Notes: a model not told the origin generated them from the letters alone. Shown: positions 2,832 to 16,481, counted from the stretch's first letter. The stretch: 16,481 nucleotides of DNA from Vitrella brassicaformis CCMP3155 (GCA_001179505.1 CDMY01000830.1:1-16481), one strand, 5' to 3'. Translations and numbers: made by a program.

Positions 2832-2858
2832 GGGCAGCAAAGCAGATGCACAATCAGT

Positions 2859-2921
2859 CTGACAACGAACGCACTGGCTGACTGACTGACTGAGAGCGGG
2901 ACACCAAAATCAAATCAACAC
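2859..2921 (-). other. Probable 5'-UTR intron of FAAL-1 containing (AGTC)n
   Basis: Minus-strand acceptor TTGTCAG at 2861-2859, 27 nt upstream of the ATG. Candidate donor AG|GTGTTG at 2921 is weak. Confidence 0.45.
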
Positions 2922-3168
2922 CTATATAGTATAAAGCCGTAACAGACCCTAACAAACCCGGTGTCAGTTACGGTAGTCGACACGTGTCGCTGTCGTCGGG
3001 GAGCGCGGCGACGTTAGGTGAGCTCAGTGAGGGCAGTTACGGATCTCTCGCTAGTAGGCTCGCAAAAGGCGTTGGTCGACTTTGCCCACTGGCTGGTGAG
3101 TTGAAAAAAGCCTTGCGCCACAACAAAGGGAAGACTGCACACGACAGGACGGGCCACCGGCAGCACAG

Positions 3169-3675
3169 ATCTCTGCCGCAACGCGTGGATCGGTGATCTT
3201 CAAGATGAATGCACTCGTGGGTGCCGTCTTTCCCTCCTCGTGGCTACTGGTGAGCACCGCACACACACACAAGCACACTCACATGTGAGTGCTGCATATT
3301 CGTGGGTTGATCTGCCTGTCTGTTTGTGATTTGTGTCATGGTGATCTCAGGTCTGAGTGCATCTGCGGCAGCAGCGTGACACATCAGCCTTCGTCCCCCC
3401 CACCCCCTTAATTCAGCGGCAGCAGTGGCCTGTCCAACGCAGTGGTGCAGAGGTGTTCTGACCTGTCCCTGGCTAAGCACGGGGCCAGACCCTCTTGATG
3501 GCCACCGCCGGCGAGGGGAACCTCGGCGCACCGCACCCACCGCCAGAGAACACACAACACACATGCATGCATGCTCGTGGCTGTGTGTGTGTATGTGTGT
3601 GTGTGTGTGCAGATAGTGTCCAAGGAGTGGAAGAAGAGTGAAGAGGACTTCCGCACCGGCGAGACCCCCTGGTGA
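3169..3675 (+). CDS. Candidate small spliced plus-strand gene of unknown function; exon chain unresolved
   Basis: Strong donors CTG|GTGAGT (3096) and CTG|GTGAGC (3250); acceptors CTCAG (3350) and (GT)n-GCAG (3612). The segment 3613-3675 has GC3-rich codons reading IVSKEWKKSEEDFRTGETPW*, and 3169-3249 reads ISAATRGSVIFKMNALVGAVFPSSWLL. I could not join these in one consistent frame. Confidence 0.3.
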
Positions 3676-4252
3676 TCATAGACGCGCCTTTCATTCCCAT
3701 GAATGCACACATACATACATAGATGGCTGCGTACAGTTTCACATGGGCGGAGAGAGCTTGAGAGAGATCGATGGTAGGCAGGCCGGTCGTCGTGTGTCTG
3801 TTTGTACAGGGGGTGGAGGGGCGATGGATGGATGGAACGCTATGCGTGAGCAGCTTTCTGCTGGCTGCAGTGAAGTGAATGTATGTGCGTGGGTGAGAGA
3901 CAGAGAGGGGAGGGGGGGGTGTGTGTAAGTGTGTGTCTGACGGCCAGCCTGCCTGCTCGACTAACGCTCGTGCCATGATGTGCTTGCTGCGTTGCAACCG
4001 ACCTTAGCGGCCATACGTGAGTGAGCATTTTTGTGGCGCGGTGCGGCAGAGGAGGAGGATCCATCACAAGCCCAGCAGATGACACCAGCGGCCAGGTAGG
4101 CACATGGATGGAGTCAGTTTGAGTGCTAACCACGGTGGACGACAGACACATCCATCGATGGCGCACACACCGCCAAAGTCCGAGAAACATGGCACGCACA
4201 CACAAATCCTGCCTGCCACGTCAACGACACGCCCACCCCACCCACCCACCCA

Positions 4253-5601
4253 CTATCCATCCATCCGTCCATTCGTGTGGTGTGGTGTGGTGGCTGTGAG
4301 GGTGCTGTGAGGGTGGATGGGAGGCCACCACCATGGGCGAGATGCGACGACGGGGGCGATCTTTTGAAGAAGCGCATCGAAATGGGACCGAGGAGGATGC
4401 GTCTCCTCCTTCTTGGCCTCCTCAAAGCGCCGCTCCTCCTCCCTCTCGCGCTTCCTCTTCTCCTTCTTCCTCTCTTCCCTCTCGCCCTTGGCAGTGCTGT
4501 CGGCGAGAGATGGGGCCACTCCTCGCTGTGTCTGGATGAAGCCGACTTGCTCGAGCCACTCCCGAGATGGAGGAACAACACGAGGAACAACACTCTGACA
4601 CATCCAGAAATGCAATCTCTGCCTCTGGCTGCGTGTCTCCCTCTTGCTCTAAGTGTGTGTATCTGTGTGTCATCCCACCTGTTTTGTGGTGGGCTGGTGG
4701 GCTGGCTGATTGTGGTCAGCGCAAAATCTTTTTGCGGTGGCCAGCGCGGCGAGCATGACGGGCTGAGGGGACTCACCAGACGCCTTCATGGTCTCCTGCC
4801 GCTTCAGCTGCCTGGTGAGGTGACCCTTCTTCGTGTGCTGCCCATATGCCACACACCAACACACACACGCTGAGAGAGAGGTCTGGGCGTGTGGTATTCT
4901 CACCCCGGAGGATCTTCATGGCCACATCCGGTCCGTGACGATCTATGGTCTGCGCACACTCTCACAACGGCTGCATACACACACACACACACACACACAC
5001 ACAGCCCCCCCCCCCCCCCCCCCCCCNNNNNNNNNNNNNNNNNNNNNNNNNNNNNNNNNNNNNNNNNNNNNNNNNNNNNNNNNNNNNNNNNNNNNNNNNN
5101 NNNNNNNNNNNNNNNNNNNNNNNNNNNNNNNNNNNNNNNNNNNNNNNNNNNNNNNNNNNNNNNNNNNNNNNNNNNNNNNNNNNNNNNNNNNNNNNNNNNN
5201 NNNNNNNNNNNNNNNNNNNNNNNNNNNNNNNNNNNNNNNNNNNNNNNNNNNNNNNNNNNNNNNNNNNNNNNNNNNNNNNNNNNNNNNNNNNNNNNNNNNN
5301 NNNNNNNNNNNNNNNNNNNNNNNNNNCCCCCCCCCCACCCCCCCCCCCCCCCCCCCCCTCTCTCTCTCTCTCTCCCTCTCCCTGTGTGTGTGTGTGTGTG
5401 TGCGTGTGTGTGATCTCACCTGGACCCTGATATCATCAGCAGCCGGCCTATCGACCTCCTTGGCCATCTCGTCCCACTCGTCAGGGTCCCACTGGTCCTC
5501 TGGAGCGATCTGCATTGGTCAGTGACAAGGTGTGCACGTGTGTGGGGACGGTGGGCCGAGCATCTCACCTCGCCCGCGGCCACACCCAGCTCCAATATCA
5601 T
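4253..5601 (-). CDS. Candidate spliced gene encoding a hypothetical protein with an acidic N-part and a Lys/Glu/Arg-rich coiled-coil-like C-part; one intron spans the assembly gap
   Basis: Exon candidates: 5601-5569 (MILELGVAAGE; could start further upstream), 5509-5420 (IAPEDQWDPDEWDEMAKEVDRPAADDIRVQ, with CTGAC branch-like site, CAG acceptor and GTGAGA donor), ~4949-4904 (TIDRHGPDVAMKILR), 4837-4777 (HTKKGHLTRQLKRQETMKAS), 4701-4679, 4594-~4253 (..REWLEQVGF..GEREERKKEKRKREREEERRFEEAKKEE..). One phase conflict remains at 4904/4837. No family recognised. Confidence 0.45.
4977..5412. repeat. Compound microsatellite block (AC)n - poly-C - [gap] - poly-C - (CT)n - (TG)n
   Basis: (AC)n 4977-5003, C-run 5005-5026, C-run 5327-~5357, (CT)n to ~5382, (TG)n 5383-5412. 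Confidence 0.95.
5027..5326. other. Assembly gap (300 N), flanked by poly-C on both sides
   Basis: Run of N seen directly. Confidence 1.
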
Positions 5602-6054
5602 CTCTCCCTGCTCCAACGCCACTCCCTCCCGATACCGGTTGCCGCGACAGGTGGGGGAACAAGGGCGCATCCCGGAAGGGCATGCGCCGTTGTGCATTGC
5701 GGAATTTCGTTTCACGCGCAGTGTGCGTGCGAGCTCGAAGGTCTCTACCCTTCGGTATCTGACTGCCTGTCTCTGCTTGGCGGATCCAGTAATGGCGCAA
5801 AGACGCCCTGAGACGGGACAGGCAGTTTTATTCATCTAATTGAGGCACCGTGACTGACTTGGGTTGACTGACCTGTGTGTGTTCCTTTATCTATCGTCCT
5901 CTCATTGTGTGGAGGGTCGCCGGAGGGTCGCGTGGAGCTGGCGCATTGCCCTGCTGATTTCAGCCTGTGTGATTTGATCATATCCGGTGCTGCTTGTGAG
6001 GACTACTGAAGACCTTCACGGAGTCCTCTTGGCGTGCAGCGGGTGGCCAGCAGA

Positions 6055-9000
6055 ATGGAGTCGGCGTCACCCAAGGATCAGCGTGACGGTTCGCGCATCT
6101 CGAGTGGTCACGATGGTGCGGCAGCTGAGGCGCCGGGAGGGGGGGTGGGGAGCGGGGAGAAATGGGCCCTTCTGTCCAACCAGGGCGAAGGAGATGCCCG
6201 GGGGTCCGCTACTGACCAAGAAGGTGCCGGCGGATCCAGCTCTATCGGCAGCATGCGCCTCAGCCACGACTTCAACGACACCATCGCCCTCTACAACCAC
6301 TACCGCACTTGCGACCTCACATTTGAGGACATGGGCCTCGTGGCATCGAGTGCTAGCACGTCTGCCGCCGCCTTGGCGCCATCGCAGCCGCCCACTCCAC
6401 CACATGTGGTGCAGAGCAGGGTGGAGACCAAGACCGTCACCCACACCCACGGGCACGTGCTGTATCGGATTCTGGCCACGTGGGCGAGGTATCAGCCTGA
6501 CGAGATAGCTGTGACCATGCTCAACGCGGAGGGAGGCGTCCAGTCGCAGCTGTCGTATGGCGACCTCCACCGACAGGCCGCCCTGGTGGCGTCGCAGCTG
6601 ACCAAGCATCACGCTGCGACGGGCAAGGGCATCGGTGTGCAGAAGGGTGACCGAGTGATGCTGTGTTACCCATCGGGCATCGACTTCGTGGTGGCCTTCG
6701 TCGGCTGCCTCTATGCAGGTGAGTCAATCAATCAATGAGTGAATGAGTGAGTGAATGAATGAATGAATGTGTGTGTGACGGTTTGCTTGTGTTTGGTGTA
6801 TGCAGGTGTCGTTGCCGTCCCAGTGTGTCCTCCAGGTGAGGCAGATTGACAGACAGACAGACAGACAGACAATCCAATCAATCGGCCGTGCTCACCAGAT
6901 GCGAGCGTCATTCATTCATTCATTCATTCATCCACCTTTGCGTTGGTCTGTGTGTGTCAGATGCGTCAAAGTTTGAGAGCGACCTTCCTCGCTTCATGAG
7001 GATCATGCAGGAGACGGGCAGCAAGGCGGTCCTCACTAACGGGGCCTATCATCGTGTGGTGCAGTCCATCAATCTCAAGCTCAAGTTCAGCCGCGTCATC
7101 CACAAGCCCTCGTCCACCAAACGGACGAGCAGCAGCCGCAGCGCCAGCCTGCCCCCCGCCAGCGACAAGGGGCGTCAGGCGGCTGCCCCCTCGGCTGCTG
7201 ACCGCCAGGAGGAGTACAGTCGGGACTGGAAGGCCGTGCGGTGGATCGACACCAACGAGATGATCAAGAAGAGGCGCAAGACCCTGGCGGTCCAGACAGA
7301 CTCGTCCAGCTCAGCAGGGAGGGAAGGCGCCAGCGAGGAAGAAGACGACATCTCGCCGTCGGCGGTGCCCTTCAAGCCCCCATTCCTGGAGGCGAGGAGT
7401 CTGGCGGTGCTGCAGTTCACATCGGGCACGATGACGAGCCATCCACGGGGCGTGCAGGTCTCCCACGGCAACCTGCTGCACAACATTCATCTCATCGTCA
7501 AGAAGTTCGGCTTCGATTCGAGATTCGACCACTATAGCGTCCGGAAGCCCCCCACACCGGCGCACGGCACGTCCCTCTCGTCCATATCTGTCGCCCTCGG
7601 CAACAGTGCGGGTGGGGGCAGCTCCCGTAGCGACACATCCAGGGGGCTGTCGGCCTCCAGCTACGATTTGGACAAGATGATGGAGTTCTGGGTTTTGCGT
7701 CACCGTCTGTCGCGTGAGGTCCTGGGCCACAACGTCAGGACATTCACCTGGGTTCCCCTCTTCCATGACATGGGTACGCACAACACGCCACAATACGCCA
7801 CGGCAAAGCAAACCGATATACCGATGTATTTGTGTATGCGTATGTGTGTGCGGTGTCAGGGTTAGTCGGTTCGTTGTGTGGATCGATCTTCTTCGGTTCG
7901 GAGTTGGTCATGATGGCTCCGCACGACTTCCACCGCAAGCCGTCGCTGTGGCTGGAGGCCATGTCGAGGTATAACTGTGTGGCCACGGCCGGCCCCAACT
8001 TCGCATACGGCCTCGTCACCAAGAAGATCACCGACGAGACGCTAGAGAAGATTGACCTCAGCAAGGTGTGCGCCTTCCTCTGCGGATCCGAACCCGTCGG
8101 CCACAACACCATTCGCAAGTTCATCGTGGTACGCTCGCTGACAAGACAGCAACGATTGCTTGTCATCCAGACATTCATTGACCATGCCTCTGTGCTGTGT
8201 GTGGGCATCTATTGTTGGCAGAAACTTGAGAGTCGAGGTGTTCGTCCGAGCAGCTTCATGCCTGGATACGTACTGGTGAGCGACGTGCAGAAAAGCGATA
8301 CTGACGGCATGCGGCACTGTCACTCGTCGTTGTTTGTGTGTTTGTTAGGCTGAGAACACCCTGTGTGTGACGTGTCGCAACGACGTGGAGACCGAGCCGC
8401 TCGTCATTGCTGTTGATATGGACGGCATTCAATCAGATGTAAGTCAGGTGCAAATTGACACACCTGATCAAACGATCGTTCTTCGATGGTTCTGCTGTTG
8501 TGTGTGCGTGTGCGTTGTGCTTGTCAGGCGATCGCTGTAGTTCAGGATGAGTGGCGCGGATTCCCCGAGGACTGCAAGAACTACAAGGAGGATGAGACAT
8601 CCATCAAGCTGCTCATCGGATGCGGCACACCAACACTGGGGACATCAGGTACACACAACAGCCGATACACAAACATGACAGCTTTCCCGCTGTTCTTCTT
8701 TCTTGTCCCCTTCCGCCTTTCAGTTGTGATAGTTGATTCGACGACCCGTCAGGCGCTCCCAGAGTGTCACGTGGGCGACATCTGGGTACGGTCGGGCAGC
8801 ACGACACTCGGCTACCACGGAGATCCACAGCTGACCGATGACGTGTTCAACGGCCGGTACAGCAGGGGCAAGACGTCAGATGCCTCTATCGCCCAGAGAG
8901 GATTCCTCAAGACAGGAGACAAGGGATTCATCTACCAAGGAGGTACGCAAACGCCGCATCGTACACCTTGTTCGCAGCCATCGCCCACGTGTTGCTTCTC

Positions 9001-12000
9001 CCCTGGTCGATCCTCAGAGTTGTTTGTGACTGGTCGCACCCGTGACATGATCGTGGTCCGCGACCGTCGCTTCTTCCCCCAGGATCTGGAGGAGGAGATC
9101 GAGAAAAGCTGCGTCATCGTCAAGCCGGGAGGTGTGGTGTGCTTCGCCATGGGCGAGGAAGGAAGCGATGCCGTCGGCGTGGCGGCAGAGCTGCAGATCG
9201 ATTGCCTCAAGCAGCTGGGCGTCCGCGACTCGACCGGTCGGTCCGGCCGGAAGAACAACCCACTCAGCTGGTTCCGATGCAACGCTAGCGACATGAGCCA
9301 AGCGGACGAGTCGTTCTTCAAGAGTGTCTCCGACGACATATGGAGGGCCGTCGAGACCAAGGTCGGCCCGGCAGTGCATAAGGTGTGGCTGTTGAAGCCA
9401 CAAAGCCTCCCCAAGACGACTTCTGGCAAGCTGCACCGCTCGAGAGCCAGCCAGGAGCTGTCAGATGGAACGCTGGACGGCGTGCTTCTATCCGTGGAGG
9501 GCAAGCCTGTCCCTGTGGAGCGCCCATCCATCAAGCAGGACACGGGCGTCATCGACTACCTGAGGAGCCTACAGAGCGGAGACAACCGCAGCGAGGTCAG
9601 TTCCGCCCCCTCGTCGCCGCGCGTGGGCGACCGCCCTTCCCCATCCCTCTTGTGTGAGCGGTTCGCCATCGGCACCCAATCGCAGCGATCGCTCTCTGTT
9701 GCCACCAGCTCGGCAGGCGACATGTCGCCCACCCATGTCGGGGCTGAAGGCAGCACGCTACTGGATTCCGCAAGTGAGGCGCTCGTCACGTCGGACGATG
9801 GCCATGACTCACCATCCGGCGAGGGCGCTGATGTGGTGGCGCCCGTCACAGCGCCCCCAATGGACGACAACGTCCGCAACAAGGTGCCTCGCGAGCTCAC
9901 TCAGCTGGACGTATCGCTGATTCACGGACGTGTCCAAGCAGTGGTCTTGGAGACCGTCGTGGAAGCCGTGAGTGGCTCGGCCATCGACCCCAGCAGTGTG
10001 ACGCTCGACACGCCCCTTCCAGAGCTCGGGATCGACTCCCTCATGGCTGTCGAGATCCGCGACACTATCTCGCAGAAGGTGGGTGTGGAGATTCCCTCGA
10101 CCACCCTGTTCGACTACCCCAGTCTACACGAGGTGGTCGATTTCATCACCAAAGAGATCGTGAACCTCCGTGACAACATCGCGTCTGAGAGTGCTGAGGC
10201 GTCCCGGAGCGAGCCTGCCAGTCTCCCCAGTCCCGTCACCACGGTTACGGCGAATGCGGTGGTGATTGTGGGAGCCGCATGTCGTCTTCCTGGCCATTCG
10301 ACGTCCCCCCTGGCGTACTGGTCGATGGTCATGCAGCACACAGATTGCGTGATGGACGTGCCGCTCACTCGATGGAACATGGCCGACTACTACGATCCAG
10401 ACCCCGACTCCGTTTGGTCGGCATACGTGACGCAGGGGGCCTTCATGGAGCACACGGACCTTTTCGACAACGGCTTCTTCGGCATCAGCCCTGTGGAGGT
10501 GCCAACCATGGATCCCCAGCAGCGGATGATGCTTGAGGTCGGATATGAGGCCCTTCACTCTGCTGGCATGCCCAAAGAGAAGCTCACCGGCAGGGACTAC
10601 GGTGTCTTCATCGGATGCTGCAACAACGATTGGCAGTTTGTCAATCCATCGCAGAAGGGCAGCAGCTACTCGGGCACGGGAGGCGCAACCAGCATCGTCG
10701 CCAATCGTGTCAGCTACTGCTTTGGACTCAGGTGGGCTGTAAGACCAAGTCGATATGTCAAAGTGATCACACGTGAACTTCACGGACCCTGTCTATGTAA
10801 CTTTCGCTTTCAGGGGTCCAAGTCTGTCATGTGACACGGCCTGTTCATCGTCACTCGTCGCAATGGACACCGCAATGAAGCACATGCGAGCAGGTGAGTC
10901 ACTGCTTCTTCGTTCGCCCCACCTTCGCTTTCATTTCTGTTCGCATCTCCGTATCCATAGGCATGACTGGTGCACTGGTTGGAGGCGTCAACCTCATGCT
11001 GGCGCCGAATCTGTTCATCGCCTTCTGCAAGGCTCGGATGCTTGCTGCCGATCACAAGTGCAAGACGTTCGATGCCAAGGCCAACGGCTACGTGAGGGGC
11101 GAAGGTGTGGTGGCCCTCTACCTGCGACAAGCGGCAGAGGCGCAGGCTGACCACATGGAGCCGCTGGCGATCGTCAGGGGGACTGCGATCAACCACGTGG
11201 GCAAGAGCGTCAGTCTCACAGCCCCTTACGCCCCTGCCCAAGCCGACTGCATCCGCAGTGCGCTCGCACAAGCCGGTGTGTCGCCGGCTGACGTGACGTA
11301 CATGGAGGCTCATGGGACGGGCACACTGCTCGGGGACCCCATCGAGATGACGGGCCTCAAGTCGGTGTTTGGGAGCCACCGGACTGAGGAGAACCCGCTC
11401 ATCATCGGCGCTGTCAAGACCAACATTGGTCATTCGGAGGGACCGTCGGGCATCTCTGGTCTGATCAAGTGCATGCTGACGCTGATTCACGGCATCGCCC
11501 CTCCCAACATTCACATGACCTCCCTCAATCCGCACATCGATGTGGAGTCATTCCCAGTCATCTTCCCCGTCGAGCCCGTCGACCTGAAGTCGCGTGCCCA
11601 TGGGACCCACTTCATCGGCGGCGTGAGCTCGTTCGGCTTCGGAGGGGCCAACGGGCACGTGGTGATTGAGGCCAGCACCACCTCGCTGCCGGCTCTCGAG
11701 AAGAACGAGTCACAGATGCCGACATGGAACCACAAGTCTTACCCCTGGAGCAACATCCGTCACCCCATCCTCGACACCAAGAAGATCTGGGACATCGATA
11801 AGGATTGGAAGGTCGACGTACCGATGAGAGACGATGTCAAGGAGTTCTTTCTCGACCACATCGTGGCCAACACGCCCCTGATGCCCGGCGCGGGCTACAT
11901 CGAGCTGATGGCTGCCGTGGGGTCGCATGCAAGCAGCAGTGCCGCAGTCAGCACGGAGATCTGCCCGAGGAAGGTCGTCACCATCGAGAACCTTGCCTTC

Positions 12001-15000
12001 GAGCAGCCCATGGTGTTGAGCGCCGAGCAGGCCATCGAGATCGTGACGCGGAAGGATACAAAGGGCTTCACTGAAATCTGCAGCAGGCCGCCAGGAGCGC
12101 ACGGTGACGAGGCAAGACATGCTGTCGGGACCATCACGTCAGTGACCGACCTGAAACCGATAGCAGAAACCACGCTCGAGACGCTCCAGGCTGGCTGCAC
12201 CACTGAGGTGCCGACGAGGCTCTTCTACGAGGAGCTGAGCAAGTCTGGCCTCGGGTATGCCACACGCTTCCAGACCGTCAAAGAACTCTACATGGGCGAT
12301 GGAGAGGTGATGGCCAAGCTTTCTGCCAACTCACCAGCGACCTTCGAGGCGGGCTTCCGGGTCCATCCTGCAATCCTCGACGGCGCATTCCAGGCGACGG
12401 CCGTCCTCCTCCATTCCAACCCAGAGGCCTTCACCGTACGATCACGCACCCCTGGACGACCACGCACCCCTCGCACCCCTCGCACCCCTCGCACCCCTCG
12501 GGCAGCCACCGGCTCGAAGCCATCGTCACCGCTCGTCCCCGTGGGCGTCTCGCGAGCGGTCATCAGGACCCTCAGCAGCAAGGAGTACTGGGCTCACGTT
12601 CGCCTGTTGGAGAAGGGAGCCAACGATGCCAAGGCTGCAGTGACGCTGTACCAGGTGGTCAGCGTGTCCGGGCAGAGGGTCAACCTGCGGCCAGTCACAA
12701 CCATTGAGGAGCTATCTCTTCGCAAGATCGACTTGTCTGCGCGCATCGAGATCCCTCGCGAGCTGCTGTGGCAGCTGGATTGGCGGGAGCGCGCAGAGCC
12801 GTCCGCCGAGGACCAGCCAGCAGCCGACGCCGATGCATCCATCCTCGTCATCAGCCACGATCAGTCGTTTGCCGAGGAAGTGAGCACGTCGCTTAAGCGC
12901 CAGACGTCCGTCCTCAGCGGGCTGCCGAGCGCCGAGGCCATCGGCGAGAGTCTGGACAAGAGCGAGTGCAGCACCGTGCTGTACGTGGCGGCTCTGGAGG
13001 AGGCGAGCGATCCCGTGGACGTGCTTGACGGCTTCCTGCAGCTATGCAAGGCCATGTCTGCCCGCAAGGGCGGCTCGCTGCCCTTCGTGTGGGCGCCTGT
13101 GCTGTCGGTTGAGGGCCATGATGGGGTGCCGCCGCGGCACTCGGGCCTGTGGGGCTTCGCCAAGAGCGCTCGGCTTGAAATGGAGATGGAGATGAGCCGC
13201 CGAGTGACGATCGGCTGCATCGAGGTGGCTCAGCAGTCGACGGCCGAGTGGTGCGATGCCGTCAAGCTGGTGATGGAGAGGCAGGCAGAGGCGCCATACG
13301 AGCCTGAAGTGTCCGTCAGAGGAAAGCAGCTGATGATTCCGCGGCTCGCCAAGGCCGCGCTGCCGGTGAGGGGGGCGATTGAGCTCCACATGGCCGAGCG
13401 GGGGGCGATATCCAACCTACGACTGAGGCCCCAGAAGCAGCCGGACAACGTGCAGCTGCCCGAGGGGTGCGTGATCGTCCGTGTGCGTGCGGTTGGATTG
13501 AATTTCCGTGACGTGTTGAACGTGATGGGTTTGTATCCTGGCGACCCGGGTCCGCCTGGCGGCGATTGCTCGGGGACGGTCGTGAGTGTTGGAGCCGGTG
13601 TGACGCATCTGAGTGTGGGCGATGATGTGTACGGTGTTGCGCCAGGGTGTCTGCGGACGTATGTGGCCACGGATGCCCACTTGATGGCCATCAAGCCGGT
13701 GACCATGTCGTTCGAGCAAGCCGCGGCGCTGCCAGTCGTCTTCGTCACCGTCGAAGTCGCCTTCAGGGAGCTCGCCAAGGTCCACAAGGGNNNNNNNNNN
13801 NNNNNNNNNNNNNNNNNNNNNNNNNNNNNNNNNNNNNNNNNNNNNNNNNNNNNNNNNNNNNNNNNNNNNNNNNNNNNNNNNNNNNNNNNNNNNNNNNNNN
13901 NNNNNNNNNNNNNNNNNNNNNNNNNNNNNNNNNNNNNNNNNNNNNNNNNNNNNNNNNNNNNNNNNNNNNNNNNNNNNNNNNNNNNNNNNNNNNNNNNNNN
14001 NNNNNNNNNNNNNNNNNNNNNNNNNNNNNNNNNNNNNNNNNNNNNNNNNNNNNNNNNNNNNNNNNNNNNNNNNNNNNNNNNNNNNNNNNNTTGCTTTACT
14101 CATTTGTCTCTTTGCTTGTCTGTTTGCTTGTGTATTTGTCGTGTACGTGTCACTCAATCACTCAATCAATCAATCAATGCGTTCAGGTGATGGGTGCGTG
14201 GCATCTGCACGAGCACTGCGTCCGTGAGTGTGTTGACCTGGATCACTTCGTCATGTTCTCGTCGGTGGCGTCGATGCTGGGCAACTTCGGCCAGAGCAAC
14301 TACGCTGCGGCGAATGCGTGCCTCGACGCGCTGTCGGTGTACCGGCGGTCGAGTGGGCTGAGTGGCCAGTCGATCCAGTGGGGCCCGTGGCTCGAGCAGG
14401 GCATGGCGGCCCACATGACGCAGCAGTACCTGGACAAGGTCGGCATGCGAGGGCTGTCCAACGAGCTGGGCCTGCGGGTGCTCGGCGACGTCATGAGGTC
14501 AACCACTGCTGTAAGCTCAAGTGGTTGTCCGGCTGTGGTGGGCTGCCAGTCGCTGCAGTGGGGCAGCTTCCTGCAACGCTACGAGGTGGAGCCCTTGCCG
14601 TCGTTCCTTTCGGACGTCATCCCCGCAGACAGGGGACTGGGAGGCGGTGCAGGCCCCGACAGCGAGGTCACTCAGGCCCTGCTGCAGATGGACGACGATG
14701 CCCTCAAGGAATACGTCTACAAGACTGTCCTCGAGACGGCACAGGAAGTCTTCGGCGGCAGCGAGGACAACATCCCGCCCCTCGACGCCCCGCTGCAGGA
14801 GTGGGGCATCGACTCGCTCGGAGCGGTCGAGTTCAGGAACGCCCTCGCGGCACGACTGGGCGTCAAGCTGCCCGCCACCACTCTCTTCGACTACCCCACC
14901 CTCAGAGGCATCATTGGTTTCATCGTCTCGGAGATCCAGGGCAAGTCGGCAAGCAAGACCGGCAAGCAGCACAAAGGCAAAGCAGCAGAGGCAGCAACCA

Positions 15001-16481
15001 GGACCCTCGCCTCTGGAGCCCACCCGCGCAGCGGCGCCCTGTCTGTTCAGTCACTGGCTACCACAGACAGCGACCGGCTGGCGGTGGTGGGTCTGTCGTG
15101 CCGGCTGCCCGGCGGGTCCAACGGTGTGTCGCGGTTCTGGGAGATGCTCATGAACGAGACGCACTGCATTGAGGAGATCCCTCTGACGCGCTGGAACGTG
15201 GACGAGTGGTACGACGCGGACCCTGATGCCCGGAGCAAGATCTACACGCGCGAGGCGGCCTTCATCGACAATGCCGAGTACTTTGACAACGGGTTCTTCA
15301 ATATTTCCCCTGCAGAGGTAACGGTCATGGACCCGCAGCAGCGGCTGATGCTCGAGGTCGGCTACGAGGCCTTCCACAGCGCGGGCATGGGTCGCGAGGA
15401 GCTCCTCGGACAGAACATGGGCGTCTTCATCGGGTGCTGCAACCAAGACTGGAACTTCGTCAACATCACCGAGAAGAGCAGCAGCTACTCGGGCACGGGA
15501 GGCGCAACCAGCATCGTCGCCAATCGTGTCAGCTACATCTTCGGCCTCAAGGGCCCCAGCATGACACTCGACACGGCCTGCTCCTCGTCACTCGTCGCCC
15601 TCGACTCGGCCGTCAAGAACACCCAGCTCGGCGTCTGCCAGGACGGCGCCCTCGTGGGAGGCGTCAACCTCATGCTCTCTCCCTTCGCCTTCGTCGCCTT
15701 CTCAAAGGCCCGCATGCTCGCCCCCGACTGCAAGTGCAAGACGTTCGACGCCAAGGCCAACGGCTACGTCAGGGGCGAAGGCGCCGGAGCAGTGGTGCTG
15801 CGCCGAGCGAGCGACCTTGGCAACCGCAGCCAACAAGCGCTGGCGACCATTGTCGGGTGTGCCGTCAACCACGATGGGCGGAGCGCCAGTCTGACGGCTC
15901 CCAATGGCCCTGCGCAGCAAGAGGTGCTTCGATCGACCTTGGCTCAGGCCAGCCTGTCGCCCTCTGACGTGTCGTACATCGAGACGCACGGCACGGGCAC
16001 CGCTCTGGGCGATCCCATCGAGCTGGGCGCGCTCAAGAGTGTGTTCGGTACTGAAGGGGCGGAGGGGGAGGACGCGACGATCCGGATGGCTCATCCGCTG
16101 GTGCTGGGCGCTCTCAAGACCAACATCGGGCACCTGGAGGGATCGGCAGGCATCTCGGGGCTCATCAAGCTCATCCTCACTCTCCTGCACGGTGTCGCGC
16201 CGCCCAACCTGCACTTCCATCAGCTCAACCCCCACATCGACATGGACGGATTCAACGTCGTCCTGCCGACGCAGCCCGTCAAGCTTCTCAGGAACAAGAG
16301 CAGCCAGCAGCAAGAGCAAGACGAGGCCATGCCGGTCCTGGTGGGCGGCGTCAGTTCCTTCGGCTTCGGCGGCGCCAACGCCCACGCCCTCATCCAGTGC
16401 CACCCCATCAGCCAGTCGTCGACAACAACGGTGCAGGAGCTGCTCGAGACGGGAGGTTTGTCAGCGGCGGCCCGGCAGTCT
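6055..16481 (+). CDS. Modular type I polyketide synthase / FAS-like megasynthase, 3'-partial: FAAL-ACP-KS-DH-psiKR-ER-[gap]-KR-ACP-KS..., with an AT-less module 1
   Basis: Hand-spliced exons: 6055-6718, 6806-6835, 6961-7773, 7860-8128, 8222-8275, 8349-8438, 8528-8648, 8724-8942, 9018-10731, 10814-10893, 10961->13790 (gap), 14187->16481. All visible introns are GT-AG and phase-consistent. The ATG at 6055 follows an in-frame upstream TGA at 6007. Domain motifs are listed in the entries below. Continuity across the gap is inferred from ER-then-KR domain order. Confidence 0.92.
6451..9480 (+). other. FAAL loading domain of the PKS (FAAL-2), with degenerate ATP-binding motifs
   Basis: [73 protein letters not shown](V)[47 protein letters not shown] (Lys codon 9428-9430). 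Confidence 0.88.
6719..6960 (+). repeat. Tetranucleotide microsatellites in PKS introns 1-2: (CAAT)n, (GAAT)n, (GACA)n, (CATT)n
   Basis: Seen directly around the 30-nt exon 6806-6835. Confidence 0.9.
9932..10160 (+). other. ACP domain 1 (loading ACP)
   Basis: [16 protein letters not shown]...[12 protein letters not shown]; phosphopantetheine Ser codon 10037-10039. Confidence 0.92.
10256..11670 (+). other. Ketosynthase domain KS1 (contains two introns)
   Basis: [28 protein letters not shown] (Cys 10842-10844 on the 80-nt exon 10814-10893), [30 protein letters not shown]; catalytic triad intact. Confidence 0.95.
11761..12735 (+). other. Dehydratase domain
   Basis: HPILD start, [17 protein letters not shown] (His 11857-11859), [11 protein letters not shown] (Asp 12379-12381). 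Confidence 0.9.
12445..12498 (+). repeat. Coding 9-bp tandem repeat (CGCACCCCT) encoding Arg-Thr-Pro units inside the DH domain
   Basis: One copy at 12445-12453, a GGACGACCA spacer, then four perfect copies at 12463-12498; translates [18 protein letters not shown]. Confidence 0.95.
12760..13350 (+). other. Structural (non-catalytic) KR subdomain (psiKR)
   Basis: LWQLDWRE...ILVISHD...VLYVAAL...[11 protein letters not shown]...[12 protein letters not shown], in the usual position between DH and ER. Confidence 0.75.
13375..13790 (+). other. Enoylreductase domain, N-terminal half (truncated by the gap)
   Basis: [56 protein letters not shown]. The NADPH-binding GGVG region is not visible. Confidence 0.9.
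13791..14090. other. Assembly gap (300 N) inside the PKS, hiding the ER C-half and KR N-half
   Basis: Run of N seen directly; it starts in coding sequence and ends inside an intron (14091-14186 with (CAAT)n and a TTCAG acceptor). Confidence 1.
14187..14620 (+). other. Ketoreductase catalytic subdomain, C-terminal half
   Basis: VMGAWHLHE...[32 protein letters not shown]...SIQWGPW; catalytic Tyr 14301-14303. No A-type Trp, so B-type is likely; the LDD motif lies in the gap. Confidence 0.9.
14710..14940 (+). other. ACP domain 2
   Basis: [38 protein letters not shown]; Ser codon 14814-14816. Confidence 0.93.
15075..16400 (+). other. Ketosynthase domain KS2 (intronless)
   Basis: [28 protein letters not shown] (Cys 15579-15581), [43 protein letters not shown]. 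Confidence 0.95.

Follow-up and report, generated by a model that had tools for sequence, protein, structure and literature searches.

In chromerids and apicomplexans, the megasynthases that are primed by a fatty acyl-AMP ligase (FAAL) probably supply the lipids of the resistant walls of cells and oocysts. The AL-ACP loading unit of CpFAS1, from Cryptosporidium parvum, is active on medium- and long-chain acids (PMC2995488), and modules that lack an acyltransferase (AT) domain are a recognised hallmark of chromerid and algal type I polyketide synthases (PKSs) (PMC7464705). The window analysed here is the complete contig C830 (16,481 nucleotides; positions count from its first letter) of Vitrella brassicaformis CCMP3155, from a genome of 72.7 Mb in 1,064 contigs, and it holds two genes arranged head to head and 3.2 kb apart, FAAL-1 on the minus strand and FAAL-2/PKS on the plus strand, both cut by contig ends. 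FAAL-2 forms, with the acyl carrier protein (ACP) that follows it, the loading unit at the head of an AT-less, fully reducing modular type I polyketide/fatty-acid synthase (PKS/FAS). To judge from its sequence, it is a moderately fast-evolving FAAL of a Vitrella clade, with a unique set of derived changes.

The reading that we favour, at a probability of roughly 45%, is that FAAL-2 is an adenylation-competent loader with a remodelled acyl pocket, pantetheine tunnel and P-loop, a change that would alter its choice of starter or slow the transfer to the first ACP (ACP1). Its changes imply that FAAL-2 either picks an unusual starter or has partly lost its activity. The domain and its core motifs are organized as follows.

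6055 to ~9440, plus strand: FAAL-2 domain, nine exons from a provisional start codon (6055-6718, 6806-6835, 6961-7773, 7860-8128, 8222-8275, 8349-8438, 8528-8648, 8724-8942 and 9018 onward)
7419-7451, plus strand: A3 P-loop, with an extra codon (ATG, 7431-7433), Ser to Thr at 7428-7430 and Lys to Arg (CGG) at 7446-7448
8264-8354, plus strand: A5, Gly-Tyr-Val-Leu, then an intron, then Ala-Glu (TAC GTA CTG at 8267-8275, GCT GAG from 8349), giving YVLAE
8774-8785, plus strand: A6 core GDIW, with an Asp codon (8777-8779) for Glu
8909-8920, plus strand: A7, KTGD, with Asp kept and Arg changed to Lys
9032-9070, plus strand: A8, with Lys to Arg at 9041-9043, the hinge Asp kept at 9044-9046 and Gly to Asp at 9062-9064
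9410-9430, plus strand: A10, PKTTSGK, identical to the consensus, with the catalytic Lys at 9428-9430

All of the substitutions that the original prediction listed for A3, A5, A7 and A8 can be read in the sequence, as can the terminal catalytic Lys that it gave as retained (KTTSGK, 9413-9430); the A6 change from Glu to Asp (GE(I/V)W to GDIW) had been missed. The A5 Val is coded by GTA at 8270-8272, where the family has Gly, and also kept in FAAL-2 are the A4 His-Asp and the TSG and Pro-x-Gly of A3.

FAAL-2 was compared with 115 full FAAL domains from the best 150 representatives of a HMMER search of 1.84 billion proteins with 8528-9562 as the query (set 1), with 118 FAAL instances that a word search found with a Chromera homologue as its seed (set 2), and with the 12 other FAAL paralogues of the Vitrella genome, read exon by exon (set 3). 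The spliced FAAL-2 model was used for alignments, counts and trees only, and family, database and PDB searches were run exon by exon. The P-loop of FAAL-2 is one residue longer than the canonical one, and a length change is seen in none of the sequences of set 1 (0/115) or set 2 (0/118). The A5 Gly, replaced by Val in FAAL-2, is present in 114/115 and 118/118 sequences, respectively, and the A8 Gly, replaced by Asp, in 115/115 and 117/118. At the A8 Lys (110/115, with no Arg, and 116/118, with one Arg) FAAL-2 has Arg, and at the A6 Glu (115/115 and 117/118) it has Asp, which occurs in none of the 12 Vitrella paralogues. FAAL-2 is the only aberrant FAAL among the 13 in the genome. The A3 change of Lys to Arg is found in about 15% of the homologues (19/115 and 15/118), and the A7 change of Arg to Lys in 6/115 of set 1 and in the paralogues on contigs C236 and C685, which also read KTGD; because homologues carry them, these two are ordinary variants and not lesions. 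The description of the listed changes as lesions does not suit the A3 Arg and A7 Lys, which are common in homologues; the insertion, the A5 Val, the A8 Asp and the A8 Arg are rare or unique.

Two counts over conserved columns set FAAL-2 apart. Of 54 columns with a conservation of at least 93%, it departs at 7, against a median of 1 in the other rows; only nonribosomal peptide synthetase (NRPS) A domains and fragments do worse. When 14 lineages are aligned with a Chromera protein as the anchor, FAAL-2 changes 10 of the 59 columns that are invariant in the 13 other lineages and keeps 49, and other lineages change 0 to 5. Eight of the 10 unique changes are conservative: Ser to Thr (two), Lys to Arg (two), Glu to Asp (two), Leu to Val, and Phe to Val. 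FAAL-2 falls within the myzozoan FAAL clade (SH-aLRT 98) and within a Vitrella-specific clade (92/92) that also includes the FAAL-1 trio and the C685/C236 pair, and its acceleration is only moderate, the end branch being 0.91 compared with 0.51 to 0.68 in sister lineages. Odd residues of other kinds occur in further paralogues, with YRDMG at A4 (His to Arg) on C731, GRIED...PQVIEE at A8 on C496 and C655, and SKHKSGK at A10 on C378 (loci L014, L013, L016, L015 and L028-L030).

The identity of FAAL-2 is clear from its family matches. The exons match Pfam PF00501 (AMP-binding) with 36.6, 38.2 and 24.5 bits at profile positions 2-69, 120-200 and 223-306; the top NCBIfam matches include the FAAL subfamilies PRK12476, PRK05850, PRK09192 and FadD32/28/21, and the best PDB matches are FAALs. 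Between A5 and A6, the stretch encoded by 8528-8648, a candidate for the FAAL-specific insertion of the N-terminal domain, aligns with FAAL profiles, the class of profile with which it was compared. The A10 Lys, A7 Asp, A5 Glu, A8 Arg and hinge Asp that mark the ANL enzymes are all present (PKTTSGK, KTGD, LAE and GRTRD), and FAAL-2 lacks the P-loop of canonical length and the Gly in A5 (Y-G-x-[TA]-E) and in the A8 hairpin. The order FAAL-ACP-ketosynthase (KS) and the placement in the tree with chromerid and apicomplexan loading domains identify a myzozoan FAAL-primed type I FAS/PKS, and FAAL-2 is a single-copy gene.

Structures and mutants of related enzymes indicate what the changed positions do. 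Mutations of the P-loop Gly, Pro, Thr and Lys impair adenylation (PMC6122825). The A5 Gly lines the acyl pocket, where a Trp, present only in short-chain (acetyl-CoA) synthetases, limits chain length, and the A8 Gly (Gly409 of CBL) lines the phosphopantetheine tunnel, with G409L abolishing thioesterification only (PMC6122825). In EcFAAL, Cys336-Tyr337-Gly-Leu-Ala340 surrounds the adenylate (PMC11837247). By analogy, the two radical FAAL-2 changes, A5 Val and A8 Asp, would sit on the acyl pocket and on the pantetheine tunnel rather than at the nucleotide. The proposal that the altered residues contact ATP or AMP or enable domain rotation is thus only partly right, as neither the A5 nor the A8 Gly mainly serves nucleotide binding (PMC6122825).

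FAAL-2 has most likely retained ATP binding and acyl-adenylate formation, given that the A10 Lys loop, the A7 Asp, the A5 Glu, the A8 Arg and hinge Asp, the A4 His-Asp, and the TSG and Pro-x-Gly of A3 are intact. The A5 Val would protrude into the acyl pocket, and by analogy with the Trp of acetyl-CoA synthetase a shorter or differently shaped starter acid is predicted; the A8 Asp would put a charge in the phosphopantetheine tunnel and is predicted to alter, and probably to slow, transfer to ACP1. The P-loop, one residue longer, would be part of the same remodelling. We infer both the residual activity of FAAL-2 and the effect of each change from the residues concerned.

Several observations weigh against a competent loader. 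Other ANL enzymes lose much of one or other half-reaction when the P-loop or the A8 Gly is mutated (PMC6122825), and when homologues were checked for the same variants, a check that the original prediction had advised for orthologues, the P-loop insertion, the A5 Val and the A8 Asp were found in 0/233 homologues and 0/12 paralogues. The excess of change at invariant columns is significant against all lineages (Fisher p = 5.5e-5) and, by the same test, against three lineages of equal or greater overall divergence (p = 0.03), and an excess of this kind at otherwise invariant columns is what relaxed catalytic constraint would be expected to give. FAAL-2 has no orthologue, and its nearest paralogues are about 45% identical, which is saturated for dN/dS. 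There is also no RNA evidence for splicing or expression, four runs having given colinear genomic contigs without splice joints, and one possible RNA run among the candidates contained none of the search words of the window.

These points bear on a serious rival, although one that we consider unlikely, in which FAAL-2 is crippled and kept for folding, docking or acyl binding, and ACP1 or KS1 is primed by another enzyme; this could be a different member of the ~12 FAALs, a trans-AT whose product is then decarboxylated, or some donor of acyl-ACP that is not FAAL-1. Besides the P-loop insertion, FAAL-2 has unique changes at four positions where the 233 homologues show little or no variation, and the excess at invariant columns points the same way, as does mutagenesis of the A8 Gly or P-loop in other ANL enzymes, which abolishes a half-reaction (PMC6122825); moreover, module 1 of the PKS has no AT, so the synthase already relies on a trans activity. 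FAAL-2 loses no universally catalytic side chain, and its unique alterations concern two structural Gly positions, the length of the P-loop and three conservative substitutions. Against this rival, FAAL-2 keeps the A10 Lys loop, A7 Asp, A5 Glu, A8 Arg and A4 His-Asp, and at 0.91 changes per site an unconstrained domain should have lost many catalytic residues. KS1 has Cys and not Gln in its active site, and therefore no signature of decarboxylative priming. The retained catalytic residues, together with the largely conservative nature of the unique changes, do not appear to be the pattern of a long-dead domain. The suggestion that FAAL-2 is a pseudo-enzyme is partly supported, in that FAAL-2 is a real outlier (7/54 and 10/59 columns), but it sits poorly with the kept adenylation residues and with 8/10 changes being conservative, and the remodelled, adenylation-competent loader remains our preference.

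The gene model bears on a further rival, that the changes are an artefact of sequencing or assembly error, of a wrong splice choice or of a decaying pseudogene, which we regard as very improbable. The contig is short, with gaps (runs of N) at 5027-5326 and 13791-14090, and the transcript search found none; but over 6941-10688 the window is identical to the genomic contigs of three runs, which belong to two studies (6717-6940 was set aside as repeats in this comparison), and because these independent contigs agree at every base the FAAL-2 changes are not assembly errors. A second strain is identical over the same positions. The introns of FAAL-2, with splice sites inferred from the sequence, are all GT-AG (8/8) and restore the frame, with donors GTGAG, GTACGC or GTAAGT. 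The A5 intron (8276-8348; 73 nt, GTGAGC...TTAG) is specific to FAAL-2, the paralogues having an unbroken PA[YF]GLAENT, and no alternative GT-AG pair at A5 brings back the Gly; the sole other donor (TAC/GTACTG) would delete Val-Leu. The Val (GTA) and Asp (GAC) codons lie inside exons, one base from Gly codons, and the Val, Asp and extra Met codons are scored as exonic with either donor. More than 9 kb of downstream coding sequence with every catalytic motif also argues against decay. The annotated protein of FAAL-2 was itself not found in the protein collections searched: a HMMER library search gave at most 41% identity, a word search with the 739-aa open stretch 8528-10744 returned only KS relatives and no FAAL-2 protein, and a word search with residues 1-700 of Chromera P0002 did not list it.

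Other features of the FAAL-2 gene are also unusual. The introns at 8276-8348 (inside A5) and 8943-9017 (between A7 and A8) are absent from FAAL-1 and the other paralogues and adjoin aberrant residues. Neither of the two 75-nt introns (8649-8723 and 8943-9017) contains a stop or shifts the frame, such that retention would add 25 residues each with the frame intact, and the introns within 6720-6960 are full of short tandem repeats (GAATGAAT, CAGACAGA). FAAL-2 begins with a low-complexity N-terminal extension of roughly 140 residues (6055-6480) and has long Ser/Ala/Gly-rich inserts before A3 (7090-7400) and between A3 and A4 (7520-7680); the A3-A4 insert is also found in FAAL-1 and other myzozoan homologues.

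Downstream of FAAL-2 the gene continues as a PKS.

9950-10150, plus strand: ACP1 (PP-binding), with the phosphopantetheine Ser in GIDSL at 10028-10042
10259-11560, plus strand: KS1, with the Cys-His-His triad in DTACSSS (10833-10853), HGTGT (11311-11325) and NIGH (11422-11433)
11600-16481, plus strand: remaining PKS, comprising DH, ER, an N gap (13791-14090), KR, ACP2 and KS2, with the 3' end beyond the contig
11851-11895, plus strand: DH motif HxxxGxxxxP
14805-14831, plus strand: ACP2
15570-15590, plus strand: KS2 Cys, with the Cys-His-His of KS2 kept

ACP1, with its GIDSL Ser, sits about 200 residues past the A10 motif of FAAL-2, and KS1 is interrupted by two short introns at approximately 10745-10830 and 10880-10960. 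Exon by exon, Pfam gives AMP-binding, PP-binding, KS, DH, ER, the N gap, KR, PP-binding and KS, with no AT domain among the matches of the PKS exons up to the contig end. Module 1 (10894-13790) contains a KS, a KS-C linker, a DH and an ER, again with no AT, and with the KR-ACP beyond the N gap it is an AT-less, fully reducing module. The DH region carries a 17-residue repeat at 12454-12501. Because the ACP1 Ser, the Cys-His-His of KS1 and KS2, and the DH motif are all kept, the PKS gene is not decaying.

The other gene of the window, FAAL-1, is transcribed away from FAAL-2 across a spacer.

2832-6054: spacer between FAAL-1 and FAAL-2, with an N gap at 5027-5326
2831-2448, 2327-1909, 1810-1569, 1441-1176, 1074-928, 836-728 and 636-1, minus strand: the seven exons of FAAL-1

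The spacer has no recognisable gene, and a Pfam scan of its seven open reading frames gave no match. FAAL-1 is canonical at A3 (TSGSTNHPKG, 1967-1938), A5 (FGLAE, 1029-1015) and A8 (GRAKDMIIVRGR, 409-374), as predicted, and also at A6 and A7. It breaks off after RVLPK at the contig start, and its A10 Lys lies beyond the contig. The proteins P0001 and P0151 share about 90% identity with FAAL-1 and have the Pfam architecture AMP-binding, PP-binding and NAD_binding_4; P0151, a paralogue of FAAL-1, is GenBank CEL95562.1 (CCMP3155), and transcriptome (MMETSP) copies exist. The end of contig C328 (118946-118948), on the same strand, corresponds to the residue 27 aa past RVLPK in P0151, and FAAL-1 is therefore almost certain to extend into an ACP followed by a reductase-like domain (R). 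Most likely, then, the start of C830 joins the end of C328, with the scaffold gap inside the FAAL-1 gene. A free-standing FAAL-1 was rejected, as it is one of three FAAL-ACP-R genes in the genome that are 90 to 95% identical, on C231, on C424, and on C830 with the end of C328. The R domain of this family has TDATSAVG in place of TGxxGxxG and GLPWTN in place of GYxxxK (Tyr to Leu, Lys to Asn), a loss seen in P0151, in P0181 and in the C328 piece (L033, C328:116031-118948), with Chromera P0006 being canonical. Because its own reductase motifs are lost, the acyl-ACP of FAAL-1 needs another outlet.

Such an outlet could be the neighbouring PKS, in a split loading system where FAAL-1, with a live FAAL and ACP and a dead reductase, provides the acyl-ACP that primes KS1 or ACP1 of a PKS with an impaired FAAL. 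The two head-to-head genes would then show reciprocal degeneracy, their dead domains serving as docking parts. We hold both parts of this proposal doubtful, more so than a crippled FAAL-2 primed from elsewhere. The 3.2-kb head-to-head arrangement, an acyl-ACP with no obvious outlet in cis and the position of FAAL-2 as the sole aberrant FAAL of 13 are in its favour, but no FAAL or PKS lies in the 10 kb upstream of the two other, near-identical FAAL-ACP-R copies, and the C231 copy instead faces a divergent Patched-family match about 4 kb upstream (C231:33867-34310). A conserved FAAL-ACP-R/PKS cluster was rejected on the same grounds, the C231 and C424 copies having no such neighbour. Further, FAAL-1 and FAAL-2 belong to one Vitrella clade, so that local duplication, of which the adjacency can be a relic, explains it at least as well as partnership does, and nine other Vitrella FAALs directly precede ACP-KS, so that loading in cis by a canonical FAAL is the usual arrangement in Vitrella. 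Synteny, docking and co-expression offer no support, and the FAAL-1 C terminus is off this contig. Loading in trans by FAAL-1, which the original prediction offered as a reason for the clustering, may still occur, though with a low probability; the other copies have no PKS that close upstream, and duplication accounts for the adjacency at least as well. More Patched matches lie near FAAL or R-domain matches on C244 and C799.

With changes at both the A5 Gly and the A8 Gly that set it apart from all sampled relatives, FAAL-2 is a natural test of the part that two near-universal glycines play in ANL enzymes that load carrier proteins. If active, FAAL-2 would suggest that the starter of an algal PKS is short or not a fatty acid; if dead, it would be a documented case of a pseudo-FAAL, and one would have to ask what primes the synthase.

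Among the known systems closest to FAAL-2 are CpFAS1 and CpPKS1 of C. parvum and their coccidian, gregarine and Chromera homologues, which have the same order of FAAL-ACP and then KS and form one myzozoan clade with it. Unlike FAAL-2, these have the canonical P-loop, YGLAE, GE(I/V)W and GRxKD...G, and the modules of CpFAS1 carry an AT, whereas module 1 of Vitrella does not. The best PDB matches of FAAL-2 are 7R7E (a Picosynechococcus PKS FAAL), FadD32, FadD28, FadD23, 3PBK (Escherichia coli) and 3KXW (Legionella), at about 30 to 40% identity over the matched stretches; these structured bacterial FAALs share the A3-A10 motif order with FAAL-2 and probably its role in loading ACP and not CoA, but FAAL-2 differs from them in its low-complexity A3-A4 inserts, its N-terminal extension and its unique A3, A5, A6 and A8. 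Short-chain ANL enzymes such as acetyl-CoA synthetase have an acyl pocket shortened by a side chain at the position of the A5 Gly (PMC6122825), and the Val of FAAL-2 is at the same position, although FAAL-2 is not a relative of acetyl-CoA synthetase, has Val and not Trp, and would transfer, if at all, to ACP and not CoA. The Vitrella FAAL-ACP-R family (CEL95562.1) belongs to the same Vitrella clade as FAAL-2, and in both the FAAL is followed by an ACP; however, that family combines canonical FAAL motifs with a motif-less reductase-like end, whereas FAAL-2 has aberrant motifs and continues into KS modules.

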